A program made the position numbers and the translations under genes. 64,000 nt of DNA from Bigelowiella natans CCMP2755 (Eukaryota; Protista; Cercozoa). The DNA lies in NCBI GenBank assembly GCA_000320545.1, contig ADNK01003472.1, positions 1 to 64,000 of the forward strand. The letters run 5' to 3'. Numbering within the stretch: position 1 is the first letter of the stretch; the number at the start of each line of letters is the position of its first letter. Positions 20,504-53,900 of this stretch are shown one piece after another. The notes below the pieces were generated by a model. The model was not told where the DNA came from, searched no databases, and saw only the letters and a list, made by a program, of their open reading frames with translations.

Positions 20504-20555
<52 letters not shown>

Positions 20556-20581
20556 ACAAACGCGCGCGCGCACACACTTCC

Positions 20582-20664
<83 letters not shown>

Positions 20665-21029: not shown

Positions 21030-21061
<32 letters not shown>

Positions 21062-21159
21062 AATGATGAGAGAGAATTATTATTGTACGCTCAGATTCAT
21101 CGTCCACATCACTGAATTTTTGTATGACCACCTGAGATCATCAAGAGTGACAACTGCGC

Positions 21160-21195
<36 letters not shown>

Positions 21196-21846: not shown

Positions 21847-21877
<31 letters not shown>

Positions 21878-22663
21878 GTGATGGTGGTGATAATGGTGGT
21901 GGTGATGATTACGGTGGTGGTGGTGGTGGTGGTGATGATCTAAATAATGATTCCAATATTTATCTTACGAAATGATATATTGATTTGAGCGAACACTTGA
22001 CACAAAAGGGGTTACTATCATTATTTGATCATACCCTCCAACAAAGGGGTCTAGCACTTCTGCGCTCTCGTTGAGAAGATCACGCAAAATAACGTGAGCG
22101 GCTACATATTCGATAGTAAGTATCGTAAAACGACGACAATGACCATAAGATGAGGAGCTTCCATCGCTATTAACATAGAAAGGATGCGAACAACATGGGA
22201 GGGTGGGGAGACAGAGCATCACTACACCACCACCATCACCACCACCCATAGGTTGGAGTCCTGCAGGATACGAATGAAATCCTATCAAAACCAAAAAACT
22301 TGAGAACAAAAAAAGAGTTATTTTTCATCGTTGAAATTATCGTGTAATCATAATAATTGTTATAAAGATTTTGCTTCTTGATTTTTATCAGTTCCATACT
22401 ACGGATCACATTCACCATCACCATCAGCAGTAGCACAGACATCATTATCGCTAAACAGCTGTATTATTAGTTGTTGGTGTTCATGTTGTGTTGTTGTTGT
22501 TGTTGTTGCTGTTGTTGTTGTTCTATCCTCAATTCATGGCGAACCGTGAGTCAGTCGTGGAAATCCACTAGGTGTATGAGGAAATCCATACTAAAATTAT
22601 CAAAATAATTATACTACTAGTAATAAAACTACCAAATATTATAATTCAGAGGCTACCTTCTCG

Positions 22664-22702
<39 letters not shown>

Positions 22703-23300
22703 ACACGCACACACACACACACGCGCGCACGCACGCACACACTGTAATCGCCTTATACAGCCCCTTGTCTGTGCTCTATACTATTTTTTTGAAGTAGGTT
22801 CACACTTAGTCATACTTTCCACTGCAGCCAAAGCGCCTCGGCAAGTACCTTGAGACGATATTATGGTCTCATCAGTGCACAATGGTGAGAGCACACCACC
22901 AGAACATAGTATTACTGTGTGACATCATCAATAGGTCATTTTCCATCGCAATTTATTACACCTTTGCCTTTTCAGGATTTCCTTGTAGAACGAGCTCGGG
23001 TCGACCACTATCATCATCAGCATTATCACCATCATATTTATGTTGGTACATTTGATGGCTTTCACCGGTTGAAACACGAGGATTTTGTATGTTTCCTAAC
23101 TTGCCCTTCACAGTTGACAGGCACTGAAGACTGCCTCCAGATATTCTCTGCTGAATATTTTGCTCTCTTACCGGTGTGAACATTTCACTGCGAAAGGGAT
23201 AATGTCTCCTTGCTAGTAGTAAGCCAACACTAGGTCTCCAAATGGTGCGACGGCTATTCACTAGAGAGGTTACAAGAACCACAGCAACTACAAGCGCCAT
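17974..23300 (-). CDS. Bacterial-type amino (N4-cytosine / N6-adenine) DNA methyltransferase, alpha-type motif order, spliced, with N-terminal signal+transit-like leader
   Basis: Exons: MALVVAVVLVTSLVNS...LVLQGNPEKAK | VLAEALWLQWK | YGFPHTPSGFPRLTH | GFHSYPAGLQPM | AAHVILRDLLNESAEVLDPFVGG | GTTILEGMRAGKRTYGFDISPLAVFVSKFHT ... ILTSPPYPGVYDYL ... EMGSKK ... AWLLNAKQVLR | VGGKMVIIIGDS ... TRTEHAILLE, stop at 17974. The 5' junctions were checked and are phase-consistent. Confidence 0.85.
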
Positions 23301-33116: not shown

Positions 33117-35202
33117 CCTGCTTTCGACAGCGAAGAAATACAGAAGATAGTGGACGACAGCATTCATCAAATCGGAGATGCTGCCGCTGCTGCTGCCTAG
33201 GAGCATCCTCATCCTCATCGCTATCATATTCTTGCTCACTATCCTCATGGATGGCTATGGGGCCCTTCATTTCCTTGCTTGCTTGTACAAGCTTCGTTGC
33301 TGCAAGTAACACAAATAATATCTAGGAAATCTGAAGAATAGTAATGATTAAGAGAAATTAGAATCATGCAACTATTTACTATACTGTAAGGCAAAGCATA
33401 ATATAAAAACGTTCATTATCAAAATACGATTATGGTTATGATTTTGATGATCGATTTTTAATGTTATCATGTGAAAATATTTGTCTGACTAATGGACTTT
33501 TGTTTGTCTCTTCTTCTACCAACAACTATTTCCTCTTCGATCTTCCTTTATCACCCCCTTAGCTATCACCTGGCCACTTGTAGGAGTAGAAGCTACAGAA
33601 ATATTCTTCAAAAAAGCCCAGGATTCTCCTGCCAAGGTACTTCGTTTATTTATTGCCTCATTACAAGTTATTTCCTATTGGTAATTATTTCATCACCTGA
33701 CTATTCCTATCTCTTTCCATTATATAATAATTAATTAATGCAGGCCTCTCTTGGATGGTGCCATACGCTAGCAATACTTTCTGCCTTGTGCTCACTGGTA
33801 GTAAATAATTAATTTTATTGCTACTATCACCATGATGAAGACGAATAAAGTTGATGATATGAGAACAACACGCAACTACTTCGTCATCATGGCAGCCGAC
33901 ACAATGACATCACTTTACTTTCAGCTGTGGGTGCTCTCTTCTCACTAAAAGCACTTTATTGATATATTCTGTCAGGGCGGCGCAATTATATCCTTTTTTT
34001 TCCTCCGATTCGCCAAAACGCAACATCTTTCAGGAGGAACCACATCGATTTTCTACAAAAACGTCAACGAAGAAAAGTAATATGCGTATTGTGATTTTGT
34101 TTCAATAGCGGATGTTCGTTACATGTGACAGTAGGTACCCCCCCACCCCCCCCCACCCCTCTCTATCTTTCTCATACACACGCATGCACTGGTATATATT
34201 GTATAATTGACTTCCTCAATTCTTGCTGAACCTATTGAAGGTCTGGTGATGACTCCTTCGATGTAGAGGCATCTCTCGGCTCAATAGACGAGAATGAAGA
34301 GGTAGCTGCTAATGTTTGATGATGGCGGTATTTCAGAGAATTTCAATTTCCCTTTTTAACAATATAAATAAATATATATTAAATAAAAAATATGTATATG
34401 TGCACATCTATGTATTAATACCTGTTTTTAAACGACGGTAACAAAAACCCATTATGCTAACTAAAATGGATCATCATCCGCAGATGGATGGTAACAATTG
34501 TGATGACTCTCCACGTTCATCGCCTCACATATCCATGATGAGCAAGATCATTGCTAAGGTAGTTGTAGTAGTAGTAGTAGTAGTAGTTCCACTTCATTTT
34601 GTTTTTTAATAGAGTATTAGTATCAGCAATTTAGTAGTAAAACAGGGAATCTAAAGATAGACAAATAATATACTGCGGTGGTTGTGTGAGATGAGAAAGT
34701 GTCTATTTAATCTGATAAGCAACATTTCGACCAAGATGAAAACAAAACTACTCCAATATTAAATGATATTTCTTGGAATATAAGGGTTACCTGATGCTGT
34801 TATTAGGTCACAAAACCATTCAGAAAGCATCCTGTACCTCAGAGATATGATAAAGTCAAATTAGACAATAGCATGGAAATGCTGGAGTCACAGTCTGTAA
34901 AAAATCTCGCACGGGCTAGCTCTTCTTTTTCTTCTTCTTCTTCTAGCTGTAGACCTGCGGATGTGTTGAATCCATTTGCTACTCATACCGACCACAAGGT
35001 GGAAGACTATATACTGCAGCAAAAGAAGAAGAACAAGAGCAACAGTGATGGTAAAGAGGAGAACGGTGAAGATGACATTGGCGCTATCCCAGACAATGTG
35101 CACACGACATCGTCGTTAGGCTTAATAAGTCCGAAACAGGTCATTTCTGCGGTTATTGCCAACGGCGACTGGAGAGACGAGATATCTGAGGAAGACATTT
35201 AA
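32280..35202 (+). CDS. Hypothetical protein(s) with N-terminal signal anchor, multi-exon (may be two genes)
   Basis: MMSLNLRFHIPAAILLLASLALAITTLVF leader, several AG/GT-bounded open exons, and a terminal exon ending DWRDEISEEDI-stop at 35202. No family recognised. Confidence 0.45.
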
Positions 35203-36113
35203 AATCAAATAGGAAAATCACTTGTGTGGTAGTTTGCTTGCGACATGGTGCGTTCGCCATTCAAACGTGGCTGTATGCGGTGATGACCACGAGCTAGCTA
35301 GCCACGTCAGCTATCACTCAAATGTTCAACGATCTCATAAAAAAGCGGGAATTTACATCTGTTTCTGGTTAACATTTCTTGAGAATGCTACGTTGTTTCG
35401 TCTAGTTCGAACATCGTTTTTGGCCACGAACCGTCGCAGCAACGGCAACTGTGCTAGTTCGCACATCGCATGAAAATGTCTTGCATTGTAGGCACAATGT
35501 TGCACCATCAGATGACGCGATCATTTTTCACTTACTTGTACATCTAGATGTTGCAACTGGGCTTCCGTGCACTTGCAGACGACTAGACAAACGATCATGC
35601 TGACATCGGTGTTGACGAAACGAACCATTGATCGACCGGCCCACGCGCCCATCAGCAATGTTTCATGCGTGCACACATCTAGACATGCAGAGCAGCACGA
35701 GCATCGCGCATGCATGCATGACTGCGAGGCAACTTGCGTCTGGACATCACTAGAACGTGCTGGTTTGGTGTGTTGAACGTGAAACACGCGTGGCGACGTG
35801 CACACGATCGACAGAAGCGCACGGGCAGGATCCATGCAAGAATTTCAGAAAGGTGCAGCAGGAGGGATCATCAGAAGTGCTCTCCAGGCGAGGACGACAT
35901 TGCTCAGGTTTGCCTCGCTCGCAGCTCGCTGCGCTCGTTGCTCACTCGGCAAATCTCCGGCTCTGTCGCCATTGTTGCCATGCTGTCCCAGCCTGCAAAG
36001 GTGATGCGATTTCCAGATGTTGCATGTTTTGGCGCCAACAGCATTGCAAAATTGCCTGAGTGTGATCAGATTTCCCACGCCCCGGTCGTTTCAGTCCTAG
36101 GCGCCATCACTGG

Positions 36114-38130
36114 ATGTCCCAACAAGACAACGACTCCCTAGCAGCAGCAGCCGGGACAACAGAAGAGAAGAAAAACTCACTTTCAGACCTCCTGCGCCAA
36201 ACAGAGACTTTGGAACAAGAGGAAGCAGCTGGTCTCGACAAATTCGCAGGACTTCGCATCACCCATGCCACGGACTTTTCACCGTTGAAGCCCAGCACGT
36301 GCAAGGCAGTGCGTGAAAAACTCCAGCTTTGCACGGATCTTCCGAAGCCTCCTGCGCTCGGTTCCCTTGGTTTCCTGGTGAAGAAAGGTTCAGGAGACAT
36401 CAAAGAGACAATCGAGGACAGCTGGACAGCTGATTGCCCACCTGCGCCGCAGCTTGCGGCGTGCATGTGCACCTCACACAACTCCTCGAAACAGAAGCAA
36501 TCCCAGAAGACCACGAGATTTTCAAAGCGGCCAGGCGTCTCATCCTTGTCGCGTCCAACGCGCCAGCTCGCAACCCACAAACGTGCAAGTGCATTGCTCG
36601 TGAACAAGTCCTCAAGTCCACGCCAAAACTAGGCAACTCCAGGGACCAAGTTTTGTCTGAATCCGGAGCCAAAGAGATCAACACAGAACTCGACACCCTC
36701 AACAAGCTGCAATGCAAGGCAGGAGCTCCTCGCTCGCAACCCACGCAACGCGGATTCATCTCGCGCTTCCCTTCCCGCTGCCAGCAACACCGTTGCCCAG
36801 GCATCCCTTGCCGACCTGGGAGCAGAGGAGGCGGTGCCGACGCAGAGGCCGTGGTCGAGGACGCAGGGGTTTCGGTCGCCAATGATCCATCCACGCCACA
36901 GAGACCCGCTCTCGGCGACGAGGATTCTGCGTCTGCATCGAGCTTTCACACAGTCAGGAAGCGGCCTGACCAAATCAGTGCACAATCAGGGATGCAACAC
37001 CCGCTTCGCAAAGAAGCCGAACCTGATCCGTCCCTCTGCAGCACCAGGAGGATGCAAGGACGAAGCTCTCCTCGGAGAAGGGAAGAAACTCGAGGCAAGA
37101 GGCATCGCACGCCGAGTCTTGAACGATGGTCCCGGGTTCATCTCTCCTTCCTTCTTGATCCCTGAGAAAAGTGAAAAAGAATGGCGGTTGATGTCAGATC
37201 TCAGGAAGCTTGATGCTTGCTGCTTCCATCAGCGTGTGAAAACGCGTGGTTTGCAGTTTGCACCACACTCTTCAAGGCATGCAACACAACCAATGGTTTG
37301 TCTCCATGGACGTGAAAGGTGGACGTTTTGGTGTGCCCACAGCAGAAGAGCACAAAAAGTGTTTCCGTTTCAAAGTGGGAACAGAGACCTTCGAACTCGA
37401 ACGGCTCCCCGTGGGATTCCAAGGCTCAGCAGAAGCGTTCCGCACCTGGTTGAAACCACATTGTCCACTTTTGCAAACACCACGTCACTCCAGCACTCAC
37501 TTCCCACAGTGGACATCTTCGATCACGTTGCAGATGACGTCTTGTTCTCCCTGCCCAGGTCAGGGGCTCGGGAGGCTCACATTCTCGCACACCGCATCCA
37601 ACAGGCGTGGTTTTCACTCAATTTGCCTCTCAAAGAGGCCAAGAGCTCTTTTCGACCCTCTCGCACCATCGAGCATTTGGGGTTCGTCGTTTCTTCACGT
37701 TCTGTGACGACACGCGCACCGAAAGAGCAGAAAGCCAAGAAAGTTCTCAAACAGGTTCGAAAATGCCCACGGAAAGCGTCGTCGGGTCTCGTCCGCCTCA
37801 GCATCATCGCCTCGACTGTGGGGATGGTCATGGCATTGTTGCCAGCAGTCAACGAAGGCAGGCTTCACACTTGTCATCTCTGCGAACTGCAAACCAAAGT
37901 GGTCCGGCGCTCAGGTTGGAACGCCACATCCAAAGGCTTACTTGGGGCAGGCCCCAGGAGCGAACCACAGTGGTGGGAAATGCACCTCATCACCACTAGA
38001 AAAGAGAGGCCTCTCGACGCAGCTTGCAGGTCGCATGACCTCACCGTTTGTGCAAGCGACGCGTCAGACAATGCAATCGCTGGCGTGCTGATTTCGGATG
38101 CGGGTTCACCTTGTTGGTGCCGACATTGTG
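36114..38130 (+). mobile_element. Decayed DIRS-like (tyrosine-recombinase class) retrotransposon: gag-like region, then RT and the start of RNase H; frameshifted, truncated, hypermutated
   Basis: GPGFISPSFLIPEKSEKEWRLMSDLRKLD, WFVSMDVKGGRFGVP..EHKKCFRF..LPVGFQGSAEAFRTWLKP, ADDVL, KSSFRPSRTIEHLGF, EPQWW and VCASDASD match the DIRS RT/RH motif series. The overlapping upstream ORF is typical of DIRS. No MT or YR domain is visible. Confidence 0.8.
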
Positions 38131-38530
38131 ATGAAATGTGCACATGCACGTGGTGTTGCAATCCAATGGAAGTGTGCACGCACAACGTGCCACACTTGTG
38201 AAAATGCCAGGTGGCTTGCAAAAATCAAACTTGAAAGTGTTTCTTCAATTCAAAATTGAATGCATTGTTTGCAACGAAACTTTTGCTTTTGCGATGCAAC
38301 GGAACACTTCAAAATCATTTCGTGAACAAAGCATCACGTGGAAAATCAAAAGTTCTCTCCTCGCAGCCAGCGTGCACAAACGGTGTGCACTCATCAATCA
38401 TCTTGTCCGTTCTTCTGCCGAGACAGGGCCAAAACGGGAACCGGAGGCATTTCTGCAACAAACCAGGTGCATTTCCATGGTCTTCGTGTGTGCCGTGACA
38501 ACAACCACCACACGTGGCCATCGCGTGTCA

Positions 38531-38856
38531 TGTAGCGCGTACCACTACGCGGGCACAAGTCACGTGCGACAACAAAGGGGTTGTCGCGGATATAGAATAT
38601 AGATAACGTAGATATTAATACAGCATAGGCACGTGGGTTCCGGCGGGACTCATGGCAGCACACCGGAAGTGTGCTGCCCCACGTGCGGCGGCATTCGCGA
38701 AAGCTTCGCGAATGATTACGCAGTGCACGATTTAATAAAAATATAATCTTTAATAAAAATAAACACAACTCTTCAAAAGGAAGCAAACGTGCCTTTCCCC
38801 CCCCCTGCCTACTTGTGCACGTAGCGCCTCGGCCTGTGAACACCTTACGCGCAACA
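38531..38856 (+). repeat. 5' LTR of Gypsy copy 1
   Basis: TGTAGCGCGTA...TACGCGCAACA imperfect terminal inverted repeat and AATAAA signals. Identical by eye to the other three LTRs. Confidence 0.97.
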
Positions 38857-38861
38857 ACCTT

Positions 38862-38879
38862 TGGCTTCCACACACGGGA
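38862..38879 (+). promoter_or_regulatory. Primer-binding site (tRNA 3'-end complement, Glu/Asp-like)
   Basis: TGGCTTCCACACACGGGA, 5 nt after the LTR. Its reverse complement ends ...TGTGGAAGCCA. Confidence 0.7.
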
Positions 38880-38895
38880 AACGATTTGACTAACA

Positions 38896-41800
38896 ATGTC
38901 ACAGCAGCTAGAAGAACAGCAGGACTTTGGCTCGCAGGCCGTGCAAGGGCACGAGCAGAAACAGGAAAGGAAGGGCGATACGGACGCTAAGGAAGGAGGA
39001 GGAACACCTCCACAGGCACCGCCGGGACCAGCACCCGGGATTAAGAAAGCAGATGCAGCAGCAGAGGCACTGGAGAACTTCTACGAGGCGGACGACGAGG
39101 ACGTGGCCGCCGAAAGCAAGAAGGTCGTAATGGCATTACGAGCCTTGCGACCCAGGGCGAGCAACTACGCCAAACTGAAAGTATCGATAGAATACAAGTA
39201 TCAGACACATGATGTTTGGGCAGCTATCATGCAGGACATCATGGATTACGAAGCAGACTTACCTCCAGAGTGGGCAGCTTTGTTTAGGAACGACGGGGGT
39301 CTGGGCGCCTCGCGGGGGACGACCCAGAGCACCGTCAAGCAGCAGCAGCCGGTACAGCGGAACACCCAGTTCATGTCTGTTAAAACAGCACCGGTTATGA
39401 TAACGAAATACAACGGGAAAAGAGGTGAGGCAAGGAGGTGGTGGAAGAACGCTAGGAGTATACTCTGCGACTTTACCCCTAACCCCACCGAAAACGACAA
39501 GCTCAAATGGCTAGCTATAATAAAGCAAGCCATGGACCTTTACGAGACAGGCAGGACCCGGATCAGGCAGCTAGAGAAAATACACACTACAGTTAGTGGG
39601 CTACGAGACGTTGAGGCGATAATGAAGGCTTTTGTAAATGAACAGGATGCTAACTCCCTACCCCAGGCTATTAGAAAATACAGAGCAATGATGCAGCATG
39701 AGAGAGAACCTGTTAGAGACTTTGCCACGCGCTTCCAGGATATGATCGACGAACTACATGATTTTAATTACAACACAGGTGATGATCAGGCAAGGTTTGA
39801 AGAGTTCAAGTTAAAGATAAAGGAATCCACTTACGTTACGGAGAAAGGCTACACCACGATGGAGGCAGCAGTGCAGGCTATATCCCTACGCGAGCAGGAG
39901 CAGGACCGCAAGTTTACCAGCCCTAAGGTACCTGGCATAGGAAACATTAACGCTATTAAGCCGCAGCGAGACTGGTACAAGGACAGGGAAGGTAACCGAC
40001 GTTGCGGATACTGCTCACGTAAAGGGAAACACACCGCTAAAGACTGCAGAGACAGGAAAGAAGGACGACCCAGGATGACGATCAGGCAGCTCAACGAACA
40101 CTACGAGAAGTTAAAGAGAAAGAAAGGCAGAGGACAAGGATATAACAACAGCAAATGGCAAGGCAGCAACAACGGGAAGAACAATAAATATAAGAACAAA
40201 AAGCAGAACAGTATCAATGCTATACAGCAGCAGATAAACGGAATATTAGATCACCTTAAGCAGGCGCCGACGAAGACAGCAGTACCAGCAACGCAGGACC
40301 AAGACAAGCCCATGACCCTAGACGACATAAAGAACTTAGGAGTATGCAACATTAATGACGAAGACGCTAACAGGACTATCAAAGTTGCTATGACCAAGGT
40401 TAAAGTTAAAGACAGCTACGGAGACTACAAGAAACTACCTGCCCTTTGGGATAGTGGCAGCATGCCGAAGTCCTTCATAAGCCTAAGCACAGTAAGAAGG
40501 TTAGGACTATTGGATCAAGTGACTAAGAAAGAACGTAAATATGCTCAAGCAGACGGAAGCTCTTCCATGAAGACCGTCGGTGAGCTAATGCTAAAGCTAC
40601 AGATACCTGGCAGCGACGCGGAGACCCAAATCAAGACCCGAGTAGCCATGACTTTATCCATGGAACTACTCCTCGGACAGGATGCCCTAGAAAAATTAGG
40701 GGGGATCATATCATTCTACAATCACAAGATATACTTTGCTAAGTTGCCAAAGAAGTCAGGCAGGACCATCAGCCAGAACATGATACGGCTTGACGAGTGG
40801 ACCTCTGAGTCAAGCGTTAATGCGTTAGAGTTTATGGACCTAGCGGACAACAAGCTACCTACACCTACCGAGCTACGGAAGAAGAACCCCGGCAAGACCA
40901 TCCGACAGATAACGGAGCTACTGGACAAGACCCCCCCAGCTGATGATTGGGATATCGACAAAGGCAAAAAGTACATTAATAAAATATTAAACGAGAAGTA
41001 CTCTGACATCACCAAGCCGACGACGAAGCCCTCCAGCAAGCTTACCCCAGTAAAGATCGAGCTAAAGAAGGGATACGAAGAGTGCATCATCAATGACCCA
41101 GAACATAGGCGACCGGAAGCGGACTGGGAAAAGATAGAGTGGCAGATCAATGAATGGGCAAAGGAAGGGAAGATAGAGCCAAGCAACTCACCATGGAACG
41201 TGAGACATGTGCTAGCTAAGAAACCTACTTACCCTTTCTTCCGCCTGGCGCACAACTTCATCCGCCACAACCGAGTAATAAAGAGGATCCAGACACCTAC
41301 ACCAAGGATAGATGACGTTATTGAACACGTCATAGGATACAAATACTACTCTTCCCTAGATAAAAATGAATCATACATGCAGACACCCATCCACAAAACC
41401 TCCCGCCCCATTACCGCGTTCTCCAGCAGGCACAGGAAGTGGCACTTCGTCGTATTCCCTTACGGCCTAAGCATATCAGGGGATGCGTTCAGTAGTCAGA
41501 ACTACAGGGCATACACACATGATGGGATGGCGTCTGTGTTGTGGGTGTTTGTGTTTGTGTATGTGGATGATGACATAATATGTACCAACACAGTCGTCGC
41601 TCAGATCTTCCTCCTGGAAAATATATTTATTAGGTTTGCACACTTCGGTTTTACTATTAGACTGCAGAAGTGTACATTCCTAGCTACAAGAATCAAGTGG
41701 TGTGGATATTACCTGGAGCAAGGCCGCATCACCCCAAACCCCGAGAAAGTAGCAGCACTACAGCAAGCCCCTAAACCTAAGAATGCAAAGGAGTTAAAGT

Positions 41801-43869
41801 CATTCTTGCAGACTGCAGCTTGGATACTACGTAGGTTCTCCCCTACCTACGCTAGGACTGCAGCTGCTTTTACTACTGCTTACCGGAAGGAGAACTCTGT
41901 AGGCCTCAGCTTCGCTAAGGTGTGGGCCAAGGCTGGCCTTGATGCCCACTTCGATAACCTAATAAAGTTATGCAGCAACACCCTATTGAATGCTAAGCTA
42001 GACACTACTAGACCAGCTACCCTATGGACAGACTGGTCTAAGCTAGGTATGGCTGCTGTACTTACCCAAGACCAGCAGATCATACGGGTGTGGGGCAGGG
42101 CCTGCACAGCAGCTGAGGCCAAGTACAGCCCTACAAAAGGAGAGTATAAAGCCATGACTGAGGCGCAGAGGAAACTAAGATACTACCTGCTGTCGGTGCC
42201 CAGCTTCACCTTAATGACTGACCACAAGCCCCTCCTAGGCATCGACCGCAAGCTCGAAGCGCCTAACGATGAGTATGCAGCTATGAGGGCGGACACGGAA
42301 GAGTTTAGGGACAAGAGGACAGTGGTCTACGCACCAGGAGACAAGCAGCTTGCTGACTATTTCAGCAGGCTGTTCGAAAAGAAAGTCCCTACCCAGGTCA
42401 CCCCTATGGTTAACGCGATTACCTTCGAGGACGGCGACTTCCTGCCTGAGCCAGAGGAGCTCCAGCACCTTCAAGAACACCTGGATAAATACAAACACAA
42501 GCATGAGGTACTTAGTGATAGGATATATGTATACACTAATAATGTTAGGCGTACCTACGTGCCACGGCGGACCAGGGGAGCCCTTCTCTTTACCGCCCAT
42601 GGACCTGCACACGTAGGAGAAAACCATATCACTGCTCTACTCTACCATTACTACTGGCCCTACAAGCTAAAAGAGATAAGGACATACCTGCGTGGCTGCA
42701 GGTGCTCCAGCTTGAAGGCGGCAGGCGTCGCCACCAAGGAGTCCAGCAAGAGCCGTGCATCTAAGAAAATCAAAGCAAGGAACTTCTTAGATATCGTGCA
42801 AATTGATGTTTATAAGTACGATGGCTATCACTACCTTACCTTCGTTGATGTGGCCACTGGAAAGTGCTGGGTTAAAAAGATTATCAAGGTCAACGTTGCT
42901 AAGAAGAACAAAGGCTTATATAAGCAGAGGCTTACTAACTGCTACCGTACCTGGGAGTCTGAGCTCCAGGCTATCCCTGATGAAGTTAGCATAAACAAGA
43001 TACCAAAGAAGTTACATGTGGATAATGAGACCTCTCTTCTACAGCTACCACACCCTAATATTGATGCCTCACCTGTATACTATGCCCAGTCCAACTCCAA
43101 GGTAGAGCGACTCCACCGCACCTTGGCCAACCTAAGCAGGATAAATAGCACCACACCAGACAAGATACAAGGGTTAGTAAACGACACCTTCACGTCTGGG
43201 GGAGGTATCAAGGATAAGGAGAGGGAAGAAGGCGACGACAACGACGACGATACCGAGAGCGAAGACGAGAAGGTCCCGTACGATGGCCGAGTTCTAAAGG
43301 AAGGACAGTATGTTAGGGCCAAGGTAAATCTGAGATCGAGAAATAAACAAGACCCCTTCTGGGGTGGCGTTGCAAAGGTTACCGAGAGGAAGGGGAGGAA
43401 GCAGTACTACATCTATGATGGGAACAGGGTCACCTTGCGCCACATCAGTCACCTAAAGAATTATGATATCGGTGAGAAGCTCCTAGAGGATGTTAAAGTA
43501 AACCCTACTGTGTGGGAGCGAGCAATGCCTTGTTTAGGACCCCGACCTAAGTTCGATGTGGAATATGGAAACAATAAGGTCAGGGTGAACGACGATTGGC
43601 GCATGAAGATTGTCTATCTAGGCTACCCTGGATTACGAAATATGGAGAGGGTAGCTATGAAAATAAAGGACGGAAAATATCAGCTACTCTACCTAGCTGT
43701 TCCCGACTTACCCTTTGAGCACTGGTATAAGGTCCTGGGGGACCTTGATGCAGAGGGCTGGTATGGACACGAACCTAAGGACGAAGGTGAGTTCTGGGTA
43801 AGCGACAAAGGAGATAAGGTTAGAGAGGAATCTATTACCTGGTGGTTGGTGAAGTTCCGAAAGCGATGA
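38896..43869 (+). CDS. Gag-Pol polyprotein, 1657 aa (Gag, Zn knuckle, protease, RT, RNase H, integrase, SH3/GPY-F-like module, C-terminal MTase-like domain)
   Basis: CGYCSRKGKHTAKDC knuckle; ALWDSGS protease; SPWN, FPYGL, YVDD RT; WTDWS, TDHKPL, ADYFSR RNase H; HGPAH..CRC, QIDV, HVDN, KVERLHRTL integrase. The order PR-RT-RH-IN is Gypsy-type. Confidence 0.97.
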   Translation: MSQQLEEQQDFGSQAVQGHEQKQERKGDTDAKEGGGTPPQAPPGPAPGIKKADAAAEALENFYEADDEDVAAESKKVVMALRALRPRASNYAKLKVSIEYKYQTHDVWAAIMQDIMDYEADLPPEWAALFRNDGGLGASRGTTQSTVKQQQPVQRNTQFMSVKTAPVMITKYNGKRGEARRWWKNARSILCDFTPNPTENDKLKWLAIIKQAMDLYETGRTRIRQLEKIHTTVSGLRDVEAIMKAFVNEQDANSLPQAIRKYRAMMQHEREPVRDFATRFQDMIDELHDFNYNTGDDQARFEEFKLKIKESTYVTEKGYTTMEAAVQAISLREQEQDRKFTSPKVPGIGNINAIKPQRDWYKDREGNRRCGYCSRKGKHTAKDCRDRKEGRPRMTIRQLNEHYEKLKRKKGRGQGYNNSKWQGSNNGKNNKYKNKKQNSINAIQQQINGILDHLKQAPTKTAVPATQDQDKPMTLDDIKNLGVCNINDEDANRTIKVAMTKVKVKDSYGDYKKLPALWDSGSMPKSFISLSTVRRLGLLDQVTKKERKYAQADGSSSMKTVGELMLKLQIPGSDAETQIKTRVAMTLSMELLLGQDALEKLGGIISFYNHKIYFAKLPKKSGRTISQNMIRLDEWTSESSVNALEFMDLADNKLPTPTELRKKNPGKTIRQITELLDKTPPADDWDIDKGKKYINKILNEKYSDITKPTTKPSSKLTPVKIELKKGYEECIINDPEHRRPEADWEKIEWQINEWAKEGKIEPSNSPWNVRHVLAKKPTYPFFRLAHNFIRHNRVIKRIQTPTPRIDDVIEHVIGYKYYSSLDKNESYMQTPIHKTSRPITAFSSRHRKWHFVVFPYGLSISGDAFSSQNYRAYTHDGMASVLWVFVFVYVDDDIICTNTVVAQIFLLENIFIRFAHFGFTIRLQKCTFLATRIKWCGYYLEQGRITPNPEKVAALQQAPKPKNAKELKSFLQTAAWILRRFSPTYARTAAAFTTAYRKENSVGLSFAKVWAKAGLDAHFDNLIKLCSNTLLNAKLDTTRPATLWTDWSKLGMAAVLTQDQQIIRVWGRACTAAEAKYSPTKGEYKAMTEAQRKLRYYLLSVPSFTLMTDHKPLLGIDRKLEAPNDEYAAMRADTEEFRDKRTVVYAPGDKQLADYFSRLFEKKVPTQVTPMVNAITFEDGDFLPEPEELQHLQEHLDKYKHKHEVLSDRIYVYTNNVRRTYVPRRTRGALLFTAHGPAHVGENHITALLYHYYWPYKLKEIRTYLRGCRCSSLKAAGVATKESSKSRASKKIKARNFLDIVQIDVYKYDGYHYLTFVDVATGKCWVKKIIKVNVAKKNKGLYKQRLTNCYRTWESELQAIPDEVSINKIPKKLHVDNETSLLQLPHPNIDASPVYYAQSNSKVERLHRTLANLSRINSTTPDKIQGLVNDTFTSGGGIKDKEREEGDDNDDDTESEDEKVPYDGRVLKEGQYVRAKVNLRSRNKQDPFWGGVAKVTERKGRKQYYIYDGNRVTLRHISHLKNYDIGEKLLEDVKVNPTVWERAMPCLGPRPKFDVEYGNNKVRVNDDWRMKIVYLGYPGLRNMERVAMKIKDGKYQLLYLAVPDLPFEHWYKVLGDLDAEGWYGHEPKDEGEFWVSDKGDKVREESITWWLVKFRKR

Positions 43870-43875
43870 AGGTCT

Positions 43876-43920
43876 AAGGGAATAAGGAAGGAAGGAAGGA
43901 GCAACGTGACTTGGGGGAGG
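43876..43920 (+). promoter_or_regulatory. Polypurine tract of copy 1
   Basis: AAGGGAATAAGGAAGGAAGGAAGGAG, then GGGGGAGG abutting the 3' LTR. Confidence 0.8.
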
Positions 43921-44246
43921 TGTAGCGCGTACCACTACGCGGGCACAAGTCACGTGCGACAACAAAGGGGTTGTCGCGGATATAGAATATAGATAACGTA
44001 GATATTAATACAGCATAGGCACGTGGGTTCCGGCGGGACTCATGGCAGCACACCGGAAGTGTGCTGCCCCACGTGCGGCGGCATTCGCGAAAGCTTCGCG
44101 AATGATTACGCAGTGCACGATTTAATAAAAATATAATCTTTAATAAAAATAAACACAACTCTTCAAAAGGAAGCAAACGTGCCTTTCCCCCCCCCTGCCT
44201 ACTTGTGCACGTAGCGCCTCGGCCTGTGAACACCTTACGCGCAACA
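43921..44246 (+). repeat. 3' LTR of Gypsy copy 1
   Basis: Direct repeat of 38531-38856. Confidence 0.97.
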
Positions 44247-44920
44247 CACAGAGTTGCCCGTTTGGAAGCACAGGCATGTCTTCACGCCGAGGAACCGAAG
44301 TGCACATGATCGCATTTGCTCATCAACATCGTCCCCATGTGAGGTCCAGGAAAACAACCCGCACAAAAATTGACATTCGCCGTCGCTGAAGGCGCATGGG
44401 CAGCAGCATGGCGGCACTCTTTCATGAAATTTTTGGGCGCACGACGAGGACATGTCAAGATCTTGAAACAGTCCCTGGTGTGAGCAGATGACATTTAAAC
44501 ATTTTAAAAAACTAAATATTTTGTGTTGTCGCAGGGCAAAAAACACCTTCCCATTGAAAAAGAATCCCCGATTCCAAATATGATCTAATTCTATGCTGCA
44601 ACATGCAAGGTGTTTGTCGCAGAGATCGAGCGGATGGCAGTTCTTCCAAGTCGCAGTTCAAAAATGCAGCAGGATACAAACCAAACAAACAACAGAGGAA
44701 GTGTTGAGAATGAGACAACAGTTCTTCCAAGTCGCAGTCTAATGCAGCAGGAAACAACTATGAACAACCTCTGCACCACTTACTTGGGACTAGAGCACGT
44801 CGTCAGGTCAGTCGTTCCCCCACCTAGCATAGCAGAGCCTTGGAGAATGACTGGCGCTACTTTGTTTGTTCGTCATCAACCCCAACATCATGCGCATCAT
44901 CAATCAGCATTTTAATTAGG

Positions 44921-45619: not shown

Positions 45620-48065
45620 GGTGCAAATTAGGTTTGACATAATTCAAGATGAACTAGATGAGAACAAATTTGCGTTCTATGAAGTAAATAGATGAAGTGT
45701 TCTCTTACTGTAGATTGTTGCCATAGTCTTTGTCCTCATGGGGCCGACACCCTTCCTCCTCCATTTTTATTCTATGATTTCTCTTGAAAAAGTATTGAAT
45801 AAGAGAACGGAGAGCGTGTTCCGTTTCCACAAGTTGTTCACGATGATTCTTTTTCTTCTGTCAACACAATCAATCAGGTTTACGAAGATCGCGCTGCATT
45901 TGACTTTCATACAACCACGCCGCACTTTCTACAGTAAGGAGAGGGAGGGAGGGGGGGGGAACGAGGAAGACAGATCATGAATTTTGATGACGCTGATGAT
46001 CATGGCAGTAACCGTACGATACTTAAAGCGTATTTATATGAATCCTTTTTTCATCTCAAGCAACATTATTTTCATCAGACTTATCATCACATCATGGTGT
46101 ATACATTTCCAGGTTCAAAAAAGTAACAGGAGAAGTACTCTCTGAAAAGGAAAGGGTGATAGTAGCAGATATGAAAACATGTAACCCCTTGCTGAATATC
46201 CCAATCATTACTTCTTTTTCTCTTTTCAATAATAATCATTAATAACTATAATGATCGTTTTGTCAACTGAATCTGCCAGACTCCTGAAAACTTCTCATTG
46301 TTATTTGCCTCTCCTCACCTCTTGCATTCATTCCTTCAATACTTCTCCTTCATACCCTCTTCTATAATAAGGTAAGCTTTTGTAAGAATATCTATCCAGC
46401 TTTAGGAGGAGGAGAGGCATCAATATGTTGGAGCTCGGTTCGTCAAGATGATGTAGAGGTATTTCTTTTGAGACTAGTAGCTATAGCAGTAGTAGTTAGA
46501 CGCTAATATTGATTGTCTGTCTTATTATCATTATAATTTTTATTTTGACATGCTATGATCGATCATGGTGGTAAAAAATTACTGATAGCCTGTGGATGAT
46601 CCAGCCTTTACAAAGGTAGAAACTACTCAGCACCTTTAGAGCATTATGTTTAACACCATCATTTATTATTAATCTGGTCTTTAAAGAAAAAGCAAGAAAA
46701 TAACTATCGTCTCCATTATTGTGGTCGTCATTATCATCATCATCATCATCATCCTCATCATCGCTACTGTTATCATACCCATGCAACAAACATCATTATC
46801 ATTCTTCTTATCAATAAATTGGACATCTGGCTTACAATACCACCTTCATGTGAGATCGATCATAGCATTACTAATTATTGCGACTATATTCTCGATTTTT
46901 CAAGGGGTCTCTACAAGTAATACACGCACCGCACTTCATTAAAAACGGAAGGTTGGTAGCAACATCAATGCAATTATGATAAGCTTCTGCTATCGATCTA
47001 TCCGCCATGATTGGTGGGTTGAGGAGATATGAATTTGTTGAACGAAATAATACATTATGGTCTTTTTCCTTGCATTTGTTACTGACAAAACGGATTAATG
47101 GTGATAGATACGATGATGGGGATTTGATGATGCAGGGTTAATGAATTCATTGAGGAGATACTAGAAGATGCCAATGGCTCCTTGTCACAAGTAGTGGAAC
47201 AATTTAAATAAATAATTGTACGTCGTCGTCTATGTGTTCTAGTCTCCCATTATGATGGGTGGATATGCATTCTCATCCTTGATATGTATTGCTTACACAT
47301 CATTCGTCGTCTATCCATAGGAGCCAGGCTGCTTACGCTTTGACGTGCTACAAAATATAGAAGACCCTAAAGAAATATATCTATATGAGGTAGTAGGTAT
47401 TACTATCAGTGAAAGGATTTAACATTTATCATCCATTTATATTATCATACCTACTACAGCTTCTGGTCTACTAAATTTGCTTCAATATATGAATTAAATT
47501 TCTCGTCATTTACCAATTGCCCTGCTGTTAAAAGAACGGTTGAGTGGGACATATGTTCTTGTTACCTCTTCCTCTTCCTCCTCATTTACGATATTCTTTG
47601 ATTGCTGGGTAGGTGTACACAAACTCAGATGCTTTCGAATATCACAAAACGACTCCACACATTGCAAAGTGGCTTGAAGCTACAAAAGACATGTATAATA
47701 TTACTAGAAATATAGAACACCACTACCAGCACCAAAATCATCATCATAATCATCATAGAATTTATTATGGCGGTAGTAGCCCAAGTAGAAAGTACTATTA
47801 CTGTTTGCAAAGCCATGTTGGAATATTTTTCTTAAATTTTCTTTACCCCTAGTACTAACTACTACTACTACAACTACTGCTGCTGCTGCTGCTACTACTA
47901 CTACGACTACTACAATCCTCATACTTCTTCACCGCTGTTAATATATTATCCATGAAGATATTATACCTCGCACAATTCCAACAGGTATGACGATTCAATG
48001 CTAGAAGCAAATGGTAATGATGGTTTTAGCTTCAACACACGACTGCACCAAGACATTATTCTAAG
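44921..48065 (+). CDS. Tandem ABM-domain (LsrG-like) protein with bipartite targeting leader, multi-exon; 3' end approximate
   Basis: Leader TAFIAIALIVCSASYFG followed by an R/S-rich stretch. Domain 1: FFVMVSLKVKPDMHDKFLKAALIDARGSVIDEPGCYR | FDIIQDELDENKFAFYE | VYEDRAAFDFHTTTPHF. Domain 2: EPGCLRFDVLQNIEDPKEIYLYE | VYTNSDAFEYHKTTPHIAKW. Confidence 0.85.
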
Positions 48066-50675
48066 CCATAAAGTTCAATTTTTAATGCTGCGAATCAGAT
48101 GTAATCGCATCAAATGCAATGTAAATCAGGTGATGTGAAGAATTTCCAACGCAGAATCAGATCCATAGGAAAAAATGTATTTCCTCCAGACAACTGGAAA
48201 TGGCGAAGCTTGTAGTGAATGTGATGATTCAACGCAAGCAAATTTGTTATTCCAACTCCATTGTAGGTCATCCATCACATTGGTGGCATTCACATTGATG
48301 TTAGAATCAAAATGTAACAACAAATGACAGCATCCAACACACGATCAAATCATAATGTCTGCGCAGTGAGCAAAAAATCACGTCATTTTGGAAGATACCC
48401 TGCCAAATGATGTTTGGTTTGCACAGCAGCATTCACGTCTGTGCGATACACAAACACACGGAGAGTTGACCAAACGTCATGTTTCTCCATTGTTTGGTGT
48501 CCCCGCGCAGTTGTGATCACAGCATTGACAATTCTTCGCCTCATCATCACGATCTAAAGTGCAATGCATTGATGTGGAAGATGTGTGCATCTCAGGTTTC
48601 GCATCTGCGATTGATCTAGTGATGAATGAATGAATGATTACTCATGATCCCATGTAATCCCGTGCAATTTGCACTGGTGCATGTGCTGAACGTGAACGCT
48701 CGAACATTGGACTTCACAAGTTTGTTGCTACGCGTGAATGAATCAAGTGATTCCAATGATGTAGTTGAAAAGATCATGCGATGCGTCATCCAACTCTAGG
48801 CCTAGCTCATCCGTGCCCTCTGGTCCTCCCCTATCAATTGAAAATGTGAAAACTGCACGAATGAAGTGATGACAAATGAACGAATGAATCATGAACCAAA
48901 GTGGCCTCGTTCCACAGGAGCGGTTGAAAGTGCGAGCAAGAACCCTGTGCACTGCGCACTGCACAGTGCAATCATTGAACATTGAACATTCTCAAATCTG
49001 ACAATGAACATTGACCTGCGTGTGGAACCATCGATGCAAAGTCTGCATGACATGCGCAAGAACCTCATGGGAGACAATAGCGTTTGCATGCAGCAGCCCA
49101 TGGCAGCGCCCACCAACAAAAATCATTGTGGAGACTTGTCAACAATGAACAACACCCCACTGACACAGGGACACATGTGTCCATGCACGTGTACGCGTGA
49201 GAAACACATGTACCCATGCACACCACATGCACCATCATTTGGCACACGTGTAGCTGTGGGTGCATGTGAAGTACGCGATGTGCACATGTCGTAGACGGCT
49301 ACACGTGTAGGGACACATGTGTCCATGCACTGATGTTGGTTGTTGTCTGGCTTCCATTGAACACTGCATTGAACCAGGCATTCATGCAAAACAACGTGCG
49401 CAAGAAACACACGGGAGACGCGCGTTTGCACGCACCAGCGCCCGCCACAAGCAAAAATCATTGCGAGGTCTTGTCAGCACCCCATGTTGGTGGTGATTGT
49501 CCAGTCAAACAGTTCATGTCAAGTGGCAGCAGCTGGTTGAGACTGGAAGTGATCGTTGAGTCCAAGTTGGGCGATCTTTGGATGACAGATGACAGCAGCA
49601 TCGAGTTTGTTGATGGTCGTGGTCAGGCTGGAAAGATGAATCGATCGAGTTGGAGGGGAGAGCTGGGACAACTGATCAAATCTCACCAGTGCCTGTTTGT
49701 CGTTCGATTGTTGACGTGCCGATGACCGAGTTTTCATTCCAAGAAAGAACAAAGAAAGAAACTTGATGATGGACCACGTTTCCAAAGTGTTGGATGAAAC
49801 TTGCAAAGTGCGAAACAAGCAGATGCACGCAGGAACAATGAACAATGAACAATGATGATGAACCACAACAACATTTCCAAAGTGTGGCAAGCAGACACTT
49901 GCAGCAAACGAAACGCAGTGCCTCGAACCAACTTCAGTGAGGACCAAAGGAATCAAGAACGGCACTTTGGCCATTCCTCCGTTCCCAGTTTCATTGTCTT
50001 CAGTGCCTGATCTTTGCCAACTTTGGGACTGTGACTTCTCTCTGCTTTCTTCACCCCGAAACGTGACAAACGCAAGTGATTTCATGCGAAATCCTCCCAT
50101 CGTGGCTTTCTCATTCTTGGAGTTTGCCAAGCAAGGCCACCATGCCTCACAGCCTCCAAACAAACCCCAAGCAAACAATCCCATGAACCACACCTTCATG
50201 GCCCACTTGGCTGCACGAGCTTCACGCCAACCACAACATCCCCGGCTTGTGATTTTGCGAAGACATTGCCCCTGCTGGGTGGCACAAAGTTGGAGGAGGA
50301 CACACTCATGACCTGCGCGGTCCATTGCTGTCCCATGTTGAGACGCTCAAGTCACGGCTAGCTGCAACAAGCAGCAGCCGTGGTCACAGCAGTAGCAGCT
50401 CAGCTAGCTGCAATGAGCAGCAGCCATGGTGGCAGTGGCACGGCCAGCTGCAATGATGAGCAGCAGCCGCAGCAGCAGCAGCAGCAGCAGTGGCAGTGGC
50501 AGTGGTGGCACTGGCGGTTCTCCGAATGTTCGCGAACTTGGATGGGCGCTGCAAACAGCAGCACGTGCCGCGCATGTGTGCAACAACGCAAGTCGCGGCT
50601 GACATGATTTTTCACACAGACCATGCAAGTGTCATTTCGCGCATTGCACTCATCCTGACGTGGTTCATCCGGGAT

Positions 50676-50943
50676 GAATCTTGGACACAGATCCGAACAT
50701 CCTTGCTTTGGCAACCAAGTCACCGGTGGCTAGGGCGACACGTCAGTCTACCCCACCGGTGAACAGGAATGTGGTTCAGGGATGAGGGGGGAAGCCACCC
50801 TCGCAACCGAAAACCCCCCGTCCATTCTGGCATTGCCACTTCGGCGAACGCAACTTTGAATCTTGAACACAGATTCAAACATCCTTGATCAGGCAACCGA
50901 GTCACCTGTGGCTGGGGCGACATGTCCGTCTGTCCCACCAGTG
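50676..50943 (+). repeat. Degenerate ~182-bp tandem repeat; the second unit is interrupted by Gypsy copy 2 and resumes at 56661-56735
   Basis: Unit A (from 50676) and unit B (from 50858) align. A reads ...CCACCGGTGAACAGGAATGTGGTTCA...; B reads ...CCACCAGTG[Gypsy]AGTGAACAGGAATGTGGTTCA.... Confidence 0.85.
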
Positions 50944-53900
50944 TGTAGCGCGTACCACTACGCGGGCACAAGTCACGTGCGACAACAAAGGGGTTGTCGC
51001 GGATATAGAATATAGATAACGTAGATATTAATACAGCATAGGCACGTGGGTTCCGGCGGGACTCATGGCAGCACACCGGAAGTGTGCTGCCCCACGTGCG
51101 GCGGCATTCGCGAAAGCTTCGCGAATGATTACGCAGTGCACGATTTAATAAAAATATAATCTTTAATAAAAATAAACACAACTCTTCAAAAGGAAGCAAA
51201 CGTGCCTTTCCCCCCCCCTGCCTACTTGTGCACGTAGCGCCTCGGCCTGTGAACACCTTACGCGCAACAACCTTTGGCTTCCACACACGGGAAACGATTT
51301 GACTAACAATGTCACAGCAGCTAGAAGAACAGCAGGACTTTGGCTCGCAGGCCGTGCAAGGGCACGAGCAGAAACAGGAAAGGAAGGGCGATACGGACGC
51401 TAAGGAAGGAGGAGGAACACCTCCACAGGCACCGCCGGGACCAGCACCCGGGATTAAGAAAGCAGATGCAGCAGCAGAGGCACTGGAGAACTTCTACGAG
51501 GCGGACGACGAGGACGTGGCCGCCGAAAGCAAGAAGGTCGTAATGGCATTACGAGCCTTGCGACCCAGGGCGAGCAACTACGCCAAACTGAAAGTATCGA
51601 TAGAATACAAGTATCAGACACATGATGTTTGGGCAGCTATCATGCAGGACATCATGGATTACGAAGCAGACTTACCTCCAGAGTGGGCAGCTTTGTTTAG
51701 GAACGACGGGGGTCTGGGCGCCTCGCGGGGGACGACCCAGAGCACCGTCAAGCAGCAGCAGCCGGTACAGCGGAACACCCAGTTCATGTCTGTTAAAACA
51801 GCACCGGTTATGATAACGAAATACAACGGGAAAAGAGGTGAGGCAAGGAGGTGGTGGAAGAACGCTAGGAGTATACTCTGCGACTTTACCCCTAACCCCA
51901 CCGAAAACGACAAGCTCAAATGGCTAGCTATAATAAAGCAAGCCATGGACCTTTACGAGACAGGCAGGACCCGGATCAGGCAGCTAGAGAAAATACACAC
52001 TACAGTTAGTGGGCTACGAGACGTTGAGGCGATAATGAAGGCTTTTGTAAATGAACAGGATGCTAACTCCCTACCCCAGGCTATTAGAAAATACAGAGCA
52101 ATGATGCAGCATGAGAGAGAACCTGTTAGAGACTTTGCCACGCGCTTCCAGGATATGATCGACGAACTACATGATTTTAATTACAACACAGGTGATGATC
52201 AGGCAAGGTTTGAAGAGTTCAAGTTAAAGATAAAGGAATCCACTTACGTTACGGAGAAAGGCTACACCACGATGGAGGCAGCAGTGCAGGCTATATCCCT
52301 ACGCGAGCAGGAGCAGGACCGCAAGTTTACCAGCCCTAAGGTACCTGGCATAGGAAACATTAACGCTATTAAGCCGCAGCGAGACTGGTACAAGGACAGG
52401 GAAGGTAACCGACGTTGCGGATACTGCTCACGTAAAGGGAAACACACCGCTAAAGACTGCAGAGACAGGAAAGAAGGACGACCCAGGATGACGATCAGGC
52501 AGCTCAACGAACACTACGAGAAGTTAAAGAGAAAGAAAGGCAGAGGACAAGGATATAACAACAGCAAATGGCAAGGCAGCAACAACGGGAAGAACAATAA
52601 ATATAAGAACAAAAAGCAGAACAGTATCAATGCTATACAGCAGCAGATAAACGGAATATTAGATCACCTTAAGCAGGCGCCGACGAAGACAGCAGTACCA
52701 GCAACGCAGGACCAAGACAAGCCCATGACCCTAGACGACATAAAGAACTTAGGAGTATGCAACATTAATGACGAAGACGCTAACAGGACTATCAAAGTTG
52801 CTATGACCAAGGTTAAAGTTAAAGACAGCTACGGAGACTACAAGAAACTACCTGCCCTTTGGGATAGTGGCAGCATGCCGAAGTCCTTCATAAGCCTAAG
52901 CACAGTAAGAAGGTTAGGACTATTGGATCAAGTGACTAAGAAAGAACGTAAATATGCTCAAGCAGACGGAAGCTCTTCCATGAAGACCGTCGGTGAGCTA
53001 ATGCTAAAGCTACAGATACCTGGCAGCGACGCGGAGACCCAAATCAAGACCCGAGTAGCCATGACTTTATCCATGGAACTACTCCTCGGACAGGATGCCC
53101 TAGAAAAATTAGGGGGGATCATATCATTCTACAATCACAAGATATACTTTGCTAAGTTGCCAAAGAAGTCAGGCAGGACCATCAGCCAGAACATGATACG
53201 GCTTGACGAGTGGACCTCTGAGTCAAGCGTTAATGCGTTAGAGTTTATGGACCTAGCGGACAACAAGCTACCTACACCTACCGAGCTACGGAAGAAGAAC
53301 CCCGGCAAGACCATCCGACAGATAACGGAGCTACTGGACAAGACCCCCCCAGCTGATGATTGGGATATCGACAAAGGCAAAAAGTACATTAATAAAATAT
53401 TAAACGAGAAGTACTCTGACATCACCAAGCCGACGACGAAGCCCTCCAGCAAGCTTACCCCAGTAAAGATCGAGCTAAAGAAGGGATACGAAGAGTGCAT
53501 CATCAATGACCCAGAACATAGGCGACCGGAAGCGGACTGGGAAAAGATAGAGTGGCAGATCAATGAATGGGCAAAGGAAGGGAAGATAGAGCCAAGCAAC
53601 TCACCATGGAACGTGAGACATGTGCTAGCTAAGAAACCTACTTACCCTTTCTTCCGCCTGGCGCACAACTTCATCCGCCACAACCGAGTAATAAAGAGGA
53701 TCCAGACACCTACACCAAGGATAGATGACGTTATTGAACACGTCATAGGATACAAATACTACTCTTCCCTAGATAAAAATGAATCATACATGCAGACACC
53801 CATCCACAAAACCTCCCGCCCCATTACCGCGTTCTCCAGCAGGCACAGGAAGTGGCACTTCGTCGTATTCCCTTACGGCCTAAGCATATCAGGGGATGCG

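Follow-up and report, generated by a model that had tools for sequence, protein, structure and literature searches.

The window analysed here is the whole 64,000-nucleotide stretch of Bigelowiella natans CCMP2755 DNA that begins contig ADNK01003472.1 (GenBank assembly GCA_000320545.1, positions 1 to 64,000, forward strand). Our subject is an island near its middle in which the remains of what appears to be a DIRS-like retroelement, together with an adjacent and unrelated repeat, carry almost no TA dinucleotide, and into which a young Ty3/Gypsy element has inserted. The features of the locus are listed below, with observed/expected ratios (o/e) of TA where they apply.

34988..35381, plus strand: expressed flank left of the island, with an RNA depth of 10-14 and a TA density that is normal to mildly reduced
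35585..38530, no strand: left part of the TA-erased island, which starts at about 35585 and holds 7 TA in about 2.9 kb, 6 of the 7 in CTAG
35909..36733, plus strand: segment alike to a second TA-free copy at G000:C2661:207252-208106 (84% identity; 92 of 105 substitutions are transitions)
36177..36712, plus strand: remnant of a gag-like first open reading frame (ORF), found by local tblastn with the first ORF of the relative L040 (E 7e-31, 35-48% identity)
36834..38201, plus strand: 455-aa ORF with 0 tyrosines, out of the element's frame at about 37.25-37.5 kb
36900..38129, plus strand: remnant of the reverse transcriptase (RT) and RNase H (RH), found by tblastn with P0002/P0003 (E 2e-73 to 4e-76)
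37246..37707, plus strand: second-frame ORF with the RT core motifs (weak match to Pfam RVT_1, E 1.2e-3; frame-1 alignment to residues 41-222 of P0003, E 5e-20)
37617..38127, plus strand: stretch aligned to the relative L038 at 86.5% identity, in which 27 of 27 L038 TA are changed
38156..38518, no strand: a different repeat, also erased, with AT-rich copies at C897 and C1497 (L003, L004; TA o/e 1.0-1.35)
38531..44246, plus strand: young Ty3/Gypsy retrotransposon with identical 326-bp long terminal repeats (LTRs) at 38531-38856 and 43921-44246, outside the scar at a TA o/e of 1.1-1.2
44247..44495, no strand: right-hand part of the island, past the Gypsy insertion and free of TA, which next occurs at 44496

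Between 36001 and 38520, TA occurs 5 times where mononucleotide composition predicts 133 (o/e 0.04). In 2000 mononucleotide shuffles of the same interval the count never fell below 102 (mean 133.1, standard deviation 8.9), which places the observed value at z = -14.4. The wider interval 35480-38530 holds 12 TA against 161 expected (o/e 0.07), and the window as a whole has a TA o/e of 0.85 at a GC content of 43.0%. Within the island CA (o/e 1.45-1.49) and TG (1.31-1.36) are in excess, CG is not depleted (0.84-0.87) and AA stands at 1.2-1.27. A first-pass annotation of this DNA, made from the letters alone, had noticed the near-absence of TA in 36001-38520 alongside plentiful CpG, and the counts bear this out. 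The seven TA that survive in 35600-38530 comprise six CTAG, at 35680, 35751, 36098, 36139, 36630 and 37997, and one TTAC at 37939. The erased stretch is interrupted by the Gypsy insertion, beyond which the DNA is again free of TA. Tyrosine codons are equally scarce, the three forward frames of the island holding 0, 0 and 1. The 455-aa ORF had been described as an RT/RNase H frame without tyrosine; the lack of tyrosine stands, whereas the ORF does not follow a single frame of the element throughout, since the RT core lies in another frame. Long ORFs are found in all frames because TAA and TAG are absent.

Relatives of the retroelement were found by phmmer with the in-frame RT/RNase H piece at 37524-38198. 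The closest of them, L038, is a 970-nt scaffold from a TARA marine metagenome with a TA o/e of 0.68. At the 27 TA of L038 the window reads CA 15 times, TG 10 times, CG once and GA once, that is, 26 transitions and a single transversion. Over the whole alignment, 44 of the 62 substitutions from L038 to the window are A>G or T>C, and 9 are G>A or C>T. An A or T within TA was changed in 27 of 54 cases, versus 17 of 212 elsewhere (Fisher p 2.5e-11), so that substitutions against the relative are indeed enriched at TA; the A>G rate was 0.50 after T, 0.09 after A, 0.11 after C and 0.03 after G. No indels accompany the changes in this clean pair. All 7 tyrosines of this closest relative are replaced in the window, 4 by cysteine and 3 by histidine. 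Against the relatives in general the commonest replacements are I>V/T/M, K>E, S>G, L>S/P, V>A and Y>C/H, as TA>TG/CA changes within and across codons predict, and the commonest ones include the codon-level reversions that had been read as restoring a TA (Y>H/C, I>T/M/V, K>E, N>D, L>P/S). The island thus offers a before-and-after view of the process on a transposable element, with a near-identical unmutated relative and every TA converted.

A family that is intrinsically poor in TA, through foreign composition or selection against UA, or else an assembly artefact, would give a similar picture with no mutator at work, and the genome's two further family copies, on C2661 and C3424, are TA-free as well; a TA-normal copy of the family was not detected in this genome. 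This explanation is refuted by the intact relatives, whose TA o/e is 0.58-0.88 (0.58-0.62 in L040-L043, intact three-ORF elements from marine metagenomes) and whose tyrosine content is normal, at 2-3.7% in most RT/RNase H relatives of about 700 aa, and by the change of all 27 TA of L038. The copy is moreover frameshifted and silent in RNA, and over 34598-38522 three independent DNA runs yielded contigs with 0 differing letters and 0 gaps, so that the assembled bases are backed by data at every position. We give the absence of a mutator next to no probability. Three outcomes had been named beforehand as fatal to a hypermutation reading, namely relatives as free of TA and tyrosine as the window, substitutions with no enrichment at TA, and assembled bases unsupported by reads; all three were checked and none was found, the relatives in particular having a TA o/e of about 0.6 and 2-3% tyrosine, so that the reading stands. 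Taken together, these data indicate that the island is very probably the scar of a TA-directed hypermutation that took place in situ.

Non-retroelement repeats are erased as well. Where the C897 and C1497 copies of the repeat at 38156-38518 have TA, the window has TG at 12 and 10 positions and CA at 7 and 6, respectively, and TA is kept at 0. This second comparison bears out the proposal of a DNA-level, both-strand, directional change of TA to TG or CA (A:T>G:C), as do the 15 CA and 10 TG of the L038 pair, counts which show, with the RT sense strand as reference, about as many hits on one strand as on the other. An ADAR- or ADAT-like enzyme that edits the A of the retroelement's RNA to inosine before reverse transcription, with copies inserted already edited, would suit a retroelement target, and RNA editors do prefer a 5' U. 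However, sense-strand TA>CA changes are at least as numerous as TA>TG (15 and 10), unrelated and satellite-like repeats are erased in copy-specific mosaics of TG and CA, the 3' G favoured by ADAR is the least mutated context, AA is not depleted, and in-place change has been seen in single-copy DNA of this species (preprint described below). Since both strands were hit, an editor working on the element's RNA, or on a single strand of its cDNA, is excluded, and we regard insertion of pre-edited copies as extremely improbable.

A second erased island occupies 48000-50943 of the window. It consists of a high-copy repeat family, for which the genome offers 806 candidate places; most copies lack TA, and they are 66-87% alike. 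At the left edge of this island TA thins over a 1-kb gradient. TE-derived DNA with partial depletion is represented by this edge, at 48.0-48.8 kb, and by copies such as the one at C3040:202-205 kb, where TA o/e is near 0.8. Individual alignment columns of this family (48.0-50.9 kb) are mosaic among copies, one reading TA 3 times, TG 20 times and CA 16 times, which is the pattern expected if each copy was mutated independently and in place.

Sequence comparison supports the view that the element in the island is the dead 5' part, comprising the gag-like ORF and RT/RNase H, of a tyrosine-recombinase (YR), DIRS-like retroelement. In intact relatives the ORFs number three: gag-like (247 aa), RT/RNase H (711 aa) and YR-like (361 aa). 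The pol proteins of the phmmer relatives carry RVT_1 and RT_RNaseH, and neither an rve integrase nor an aspartic protease domain was present in the ten relatives' pol proteins scanned. The nearest atlas clusters to the family's RT/RH protein include RT/RH/Dam-type proteins of the sort typical for DIRS elements, with Evosea clusters among them. The third ORF, of 361-408 aa, is found in L040-L045 and in a copy on contig C3424 of the same genome; its language-model neighbours are PF00589 (Phage_integrase) clusters in 17 of 30 cases, plus NDC10_II, DUF3504 and ALOG, every one of these being related to tyrosine recombinases, and by eye an Arg box is visible in it, as is an LR...HYY box at the C terminus. 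It gave no Pfam match up to E 5 and no PDB sequence match with a single protein or a profile, only 3 homologues were found, and its AlphaFold2 model (pLDDT 38) was too poor for a fold search. The DIRS label given on first reading is therefore upheld in the sense of a YR retroelement. The ORF order gag, RT/RH, YR resembles the Ngaro/PAT type and not DIRS1 proper, the recombinase call coming from the language-model neighbours and the motifs read by eye. The window copy itself breaks off behind RNase H and lacks the recombinase ORF; its RT/RNase H remnant stops at about residue 400-414 of a protein of about 700 aa and carries at least 2 frameshifts (near 37.25 and 37.5 kb).

Another copy of the family in this genome is the following.

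G000:C3424:65399-69915 (L046, L048): RT/RH followed by the recombinase-like ORF, with an inverted gag piece

It has been erased too, L046 having 4 TA in 3.9 kb, and the same is true of the gag fragment on C2661.

Two full-length relatives, L044 and L045 (ENA assembly ERZ21854029, contigs of 4.2-4.3 kb), are partly erased, with a TA o/e of 0.29-0.36 and 0.3% tyrosine. All three of their ORFs are open, and the third holds 1 and 0 tyrosines, compared to 12 in intact relatives. Their surviving TA are nearly all CTAC, CTAA or CTAG, the same signature outside this assembly.

The context of surviving TA was surveyed in 67.85 kb of TA-poor DNA, comprising the window and 30-odd loci. CTAG accounts for 110 of the 283 survivors (Fisher p 9e-75). 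Relative to normal DNA, the density of survivors is 64% for CTAG, 6-10% for CTAC/GTAG, CTAA/TTAG and GTAC, and 0-3% for A/T-flanked sites, and L044 and L045 rank the contexts in the same order. CTAG is thus nearly immune to the process. Products in which both letters changed are rare, CG being read at 1 of the 27 sites of the L038 pair and at 45 of about 5,300 in pooled pairs (0.8%), which indicates that one strand is hit per event and that the first hit destroys the TA site. A change of TA to TG or CA never makes TAA or TAG, and makes TGA solely from TAA, so that no new in-frame stop arises. Inactivation therefore proceeds by missense alone, and open frames in erased DNA are no evidence of function.

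The first-pass annotation could not match the signature to a described pathway. That statement is now outdated, as the same signature has been shown to arise de novo in a mutation-accumulation experiment with B. natans (Mettrop et al., bioRxiv 10.64898/2026.01.13.699255, 2026). In that preprint, A>G and T>C changes at TA account for 230 of 231 mutations in inserts of nucleocytoplasmic large DNA virus (NCLDV) and virophage origin; they fell on both strands, at rates about 1000-fold over background and in some lines only. The main target, the NCLDV insert, is single-copy and silent. Its authors also report 124 clusters poor in TA and rich in CA plus TG, find RT and DDE Pfam domains enriched among low-TA gene models, and put forward an adenosine deaminase of the ADAT2 type as the enzyme, citing reports of DNA activity for amphioxus and trypanosome ADAT2. 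The process that made the scar described here is the same one: in both cases TA is lost by A>G and T>C on both strands, CA plus TG is gained, and the target is silent foreign or selfish DNA. The two accounts differ in their material. The published process was shown on NCLDV and virophage inserts, transposable elements entering as a Pfam enrichment, whereas the island is a YR-retroelement relic compared base by base. The sparing of CTAG, the hit on one strand per event and the no-stop property go without mention in the main text of Mettrop et al. We reconstructed the cluster cut-offs of the preprint, with a threshold of 1.52 for Rho of CA plus TG. The island scores 1.28-1.50, below this value, and the 48-51 kb island passes both cut-offs. 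The island is therefore probably outside the 124 published clusters, and since it fails the reconstructed CA-plus-TG cut-off the published count is probably an underestimate. What we describe is a new and well-resolved instance of a process already in the preprint, not its discovery; added here are the sparing of CTAG, the one-strand event, the lack of stop creation, the silence of the island and a transcribed high-copy Gypsy left untouched in erased DNA.

The Gypsy element bounds and dates the scar. A second copy lies at 50944-56660, likewise within erased DNA; it is 99.93% identical to the one at 38531-44246 and has identical LTRs and the same TA o/e of 1.1-1.2. One non-TA substitution and three indels (42069-42172) are all that separates the two copies, and the number of TA-type differences between them is 0. 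No target-site duplication was seen by eye at either copy. The process had been supposed to be triggered by repeats, in the manner of the repeat-induced point mutation (RIP) known from fungi. We abandon this part of the proposal, as near-identical 5.7-kb Gypsy copies stand untouched in erased DNA and the main target of the preprint is single-copy. In the one RNA run available, depth is about 0 across 35579-38336, and the island is thus transcriptionally silent in that run; over the Gypsy LTR the depth peaks at 15,874, and a poly(A) end lies at about 38778. From the numbers of the preprint (211 mutations, 6,169 TA, 3,132 generations) we calculate a rate of about 1.1e-5 per TA per generation. 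At this rate the erasure of 96% of TA would need about 3e5 generations of continuous activity, and a Gypsy copy, holding about 380 TA, would be hit every few hundred generations if it were a target, so that the Gypsy copies would be either very young or not targeted.

Matches of the contigs from all three DNA runs end at 38522, 8 nt before the start of the LTR at 38531, and one contig continues for another 128 letters with no match in the stretch compared, which may reflect an insertion polymorphism or a between-strain rearrangement.

At a probability of roughly 0.6, we favour a joint reading in which a DIRS-like relic and the repeat adjacent to it were hypermutated in place at TA, by adenine deamination and with targeting by the silent state. 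The dead part of the retroelement and its unrelated neighbour would have been mutated where they lie in the chromosome. The sequence shows TA steps turned into TG or CA with one strand hit per event, the two strands about equally, very poorly at CTAG and with other A:T pairs largely spared. All tyrosine codons are lost in this way, and such loss takes in the catalytic tyrosine of a tyrosine recombinase and the Y of the RT YxDD motif. A deaminase of the TadA/ADAT2 type, or another, may convert adenine to inosine in the T-A context, after which inosine would be read as G at replication, and silent chromatin or a silencing state, not repeat number, would guide the enzyme. For the chemistry taken by itself, the balance tips slightly towards adenine deamination, which would fit the 5' T preference of TadA-type enzymes; the genome has 6 loci with TadA/MafB19-type deaminase domains, and 1 further locus carries an A_deamin domain.

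The attacked base could instead be the thymine of TA, oxidised or otherwise modified (5-hydroxymethyluracil- or 5-formyluracil-like, for example) and mispairing with G, and T>C on one or the other strand explains TA>CA and TA>TG equally well. Some protists replace T by 5-hydroxymethyluracil, preferentially at TA, and 5-formyluracil mispairs with G. A six-frame search of the genome gave no match to Tet_JBP (PF12851), a weak negative given that the genes are intron-rich and that control genomes were also without signal. A whole-genome search with N6_N4_Mtase (PF01555) likewise gave no match, weak again in view of intron-rich genes with short exons. With deaminase candidates present and a 5' T preference typical of TadA-type enzymes, we consider attack on thymine unlikely.

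Error-prone patch synthesis, in which silent foreign DNA is nicked and a low-fidelity polymerase places G opposite T at TA, in the manner of the WA>WG errors that Pol-eta makes in somatic hypermutation, would share the focus on A:T pairs, the wealth of transitions, the involvement of both strands and the variation of activity among the lines of the preprint. Yet ApA is spared here, as the AA ratio and the A>G rates of 0.09 at ApA and 0.50 at TpA show, transversions amount to 1 of 27 TA sites, transitions make up 230 of 231 de novo mutations, and indels are lacking in the clean pair. This mechanism seems to us improbable.

Returning to TA-directed adenine deamination guided by the silent state, several observations weigh against it. 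Because TA reads alike on either strand, the sequence gives no means of separating an attack on A from an attack on T. None of the candidate deaminase loci (6 + 1) is linked to the scar. The case for guidance by silent chromatin comes from one RNA run, and the virophage target of the preprint is not set apart by expression. No de novo change was found in 34598-38522 among the contigs of the three DNA runs, which is to be expected because hardly any TA substrate remains (CTAG and one TTAC), and contigs also drop rare variants. Finally, a simple half-site rule for the sparing of CTAG, by which a G after the A or a C before the T protects, was not borne out by the direction of the products: at CTAN and NTAG sites of the L038 pair, 4 products went as protection by a G after A predicts and 5 the opposite way, and repeat columns were mixed. 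Survivor densities are roughly compatible with an additive half-site model. In Table S2 of the preprint, counted by hand, TAG-type half-sites make up 20 of 206 (observed/expected 0.47), with A>G at TAG in 3 of 91 and T>C at CTA in 17 of 119. Shared ancestry confounds a tabulation in which every repeat copy was set against every other, and the tabulation was not relied on for this rule.

A more specific version is conceivable, and we hold it to be doubtful: a dedicated DNA editor, not a housekeeping tRNA deaminase, would be guided by the chromatin or silencing state, read the TA step in the duplex and kill its targets by missense alone, for instance through loss of all tyrosine codons, those for the catalytic tyrosine of tyrosine recombinases included, with the transcribed Gypsy escaping and landing preferentially in erased silent islands. 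Reading of the TA step in the duplex would explain the immunity of CTAG and the product direction with no need for a one-strand neighbour rule.

A dinucleotide-specific A:T>G:C mutator acting on foreign DNA is a rare form of eukaryotic genome defence, opposite in direction to RIP and APOBEC. Fungal RIP likewise riddles selfish DNA in place with dinucleotide-specific transitions, after which the copies diverge. However, RIP makes CpA>TpA and thereby creates TA and stops, whereas the process seen here destroys TA and makes no stops. RIP also needs duplication, whereas here near-identical Gypsy copies are spared and the main target of the preprint is single-copy; and RIP acts in the premeiotic dikaryon, whereas the B. 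natans process ran in culture during mutation accumulation, according to the preprint. APOBEC3 too leaves marks of a deaminase type on retroelements, in a dinucleotide context. Its action is confined to minus-strand cDNA, where C becomes U, and the outcome is a strand-biased G>A, unlike the island, where A:T>G:C changes are strand-symmetric, made in place and found in non-retroelement DNA too. ADAR hyper-editing and fungal TAD2/TAD3 mRNA editing have the A>G read-out in common with the island, and the fungal and TadA-type enzymes prefer a 5' U. These editors act on RNA and so on the sense strand only, ADAR tolerates a 5' A and likes a 3' G, and fungal editing prefers UAG, whereas the island has lost no AA and resists most strongly at TAG/CTAG. 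TadA and ADAT2-ADAT3 come closer, their natural substrate U33-A34 being an A after T/U, with the 6 domain loci in this genome; the known substrates of these enzymes are single-stranded loops, and the process in the island avoids TAG, whereas the natural A34 substrates of tRNA adenosine deaminases include A followed by G. With DIRS-order elements the family shares its gag-like and RT/RNase H ORFs, probably its YR-like third ORF, and the lack of rve and protease domains in the ten pol proteins scanned. These data narrow the search for the enzyme, since any candidate has to work on TA while leaving CTAG alone, do without repeats and suit silent chromatin. For annotation, TA-free and tyrosine-free open frames in this genome are to be taken as scars and not as genes.

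Minor observations concern neighbouring contexts and loci. Secondary activity at CpA or ApA was considered and rejected as too weak to claim, the A>G rates of 0.09-0.11 in the L038 pair comparing with G>A controls of 0.02-0.08; at CpA taken singly the values are 0.11 and 0.02, and a weak side activity there is possible. CpG o/e within and at the edges of erased islands (35000-38530, L001, L002) is 0.8-1.24, versus 0.4-0.75 in the surrounding DNA. Nine minus-strand ORF pieces at 17974-23300 had no Pfam match at E 0.01 or below, a weak negative given the short exons. A small TA-poor patch lies at 16860-17350, where TA o/e is 0.34-0.41 in 1-kb windows and successive TA are about 150-300 bp apart, with ordinary DNA adjoining.

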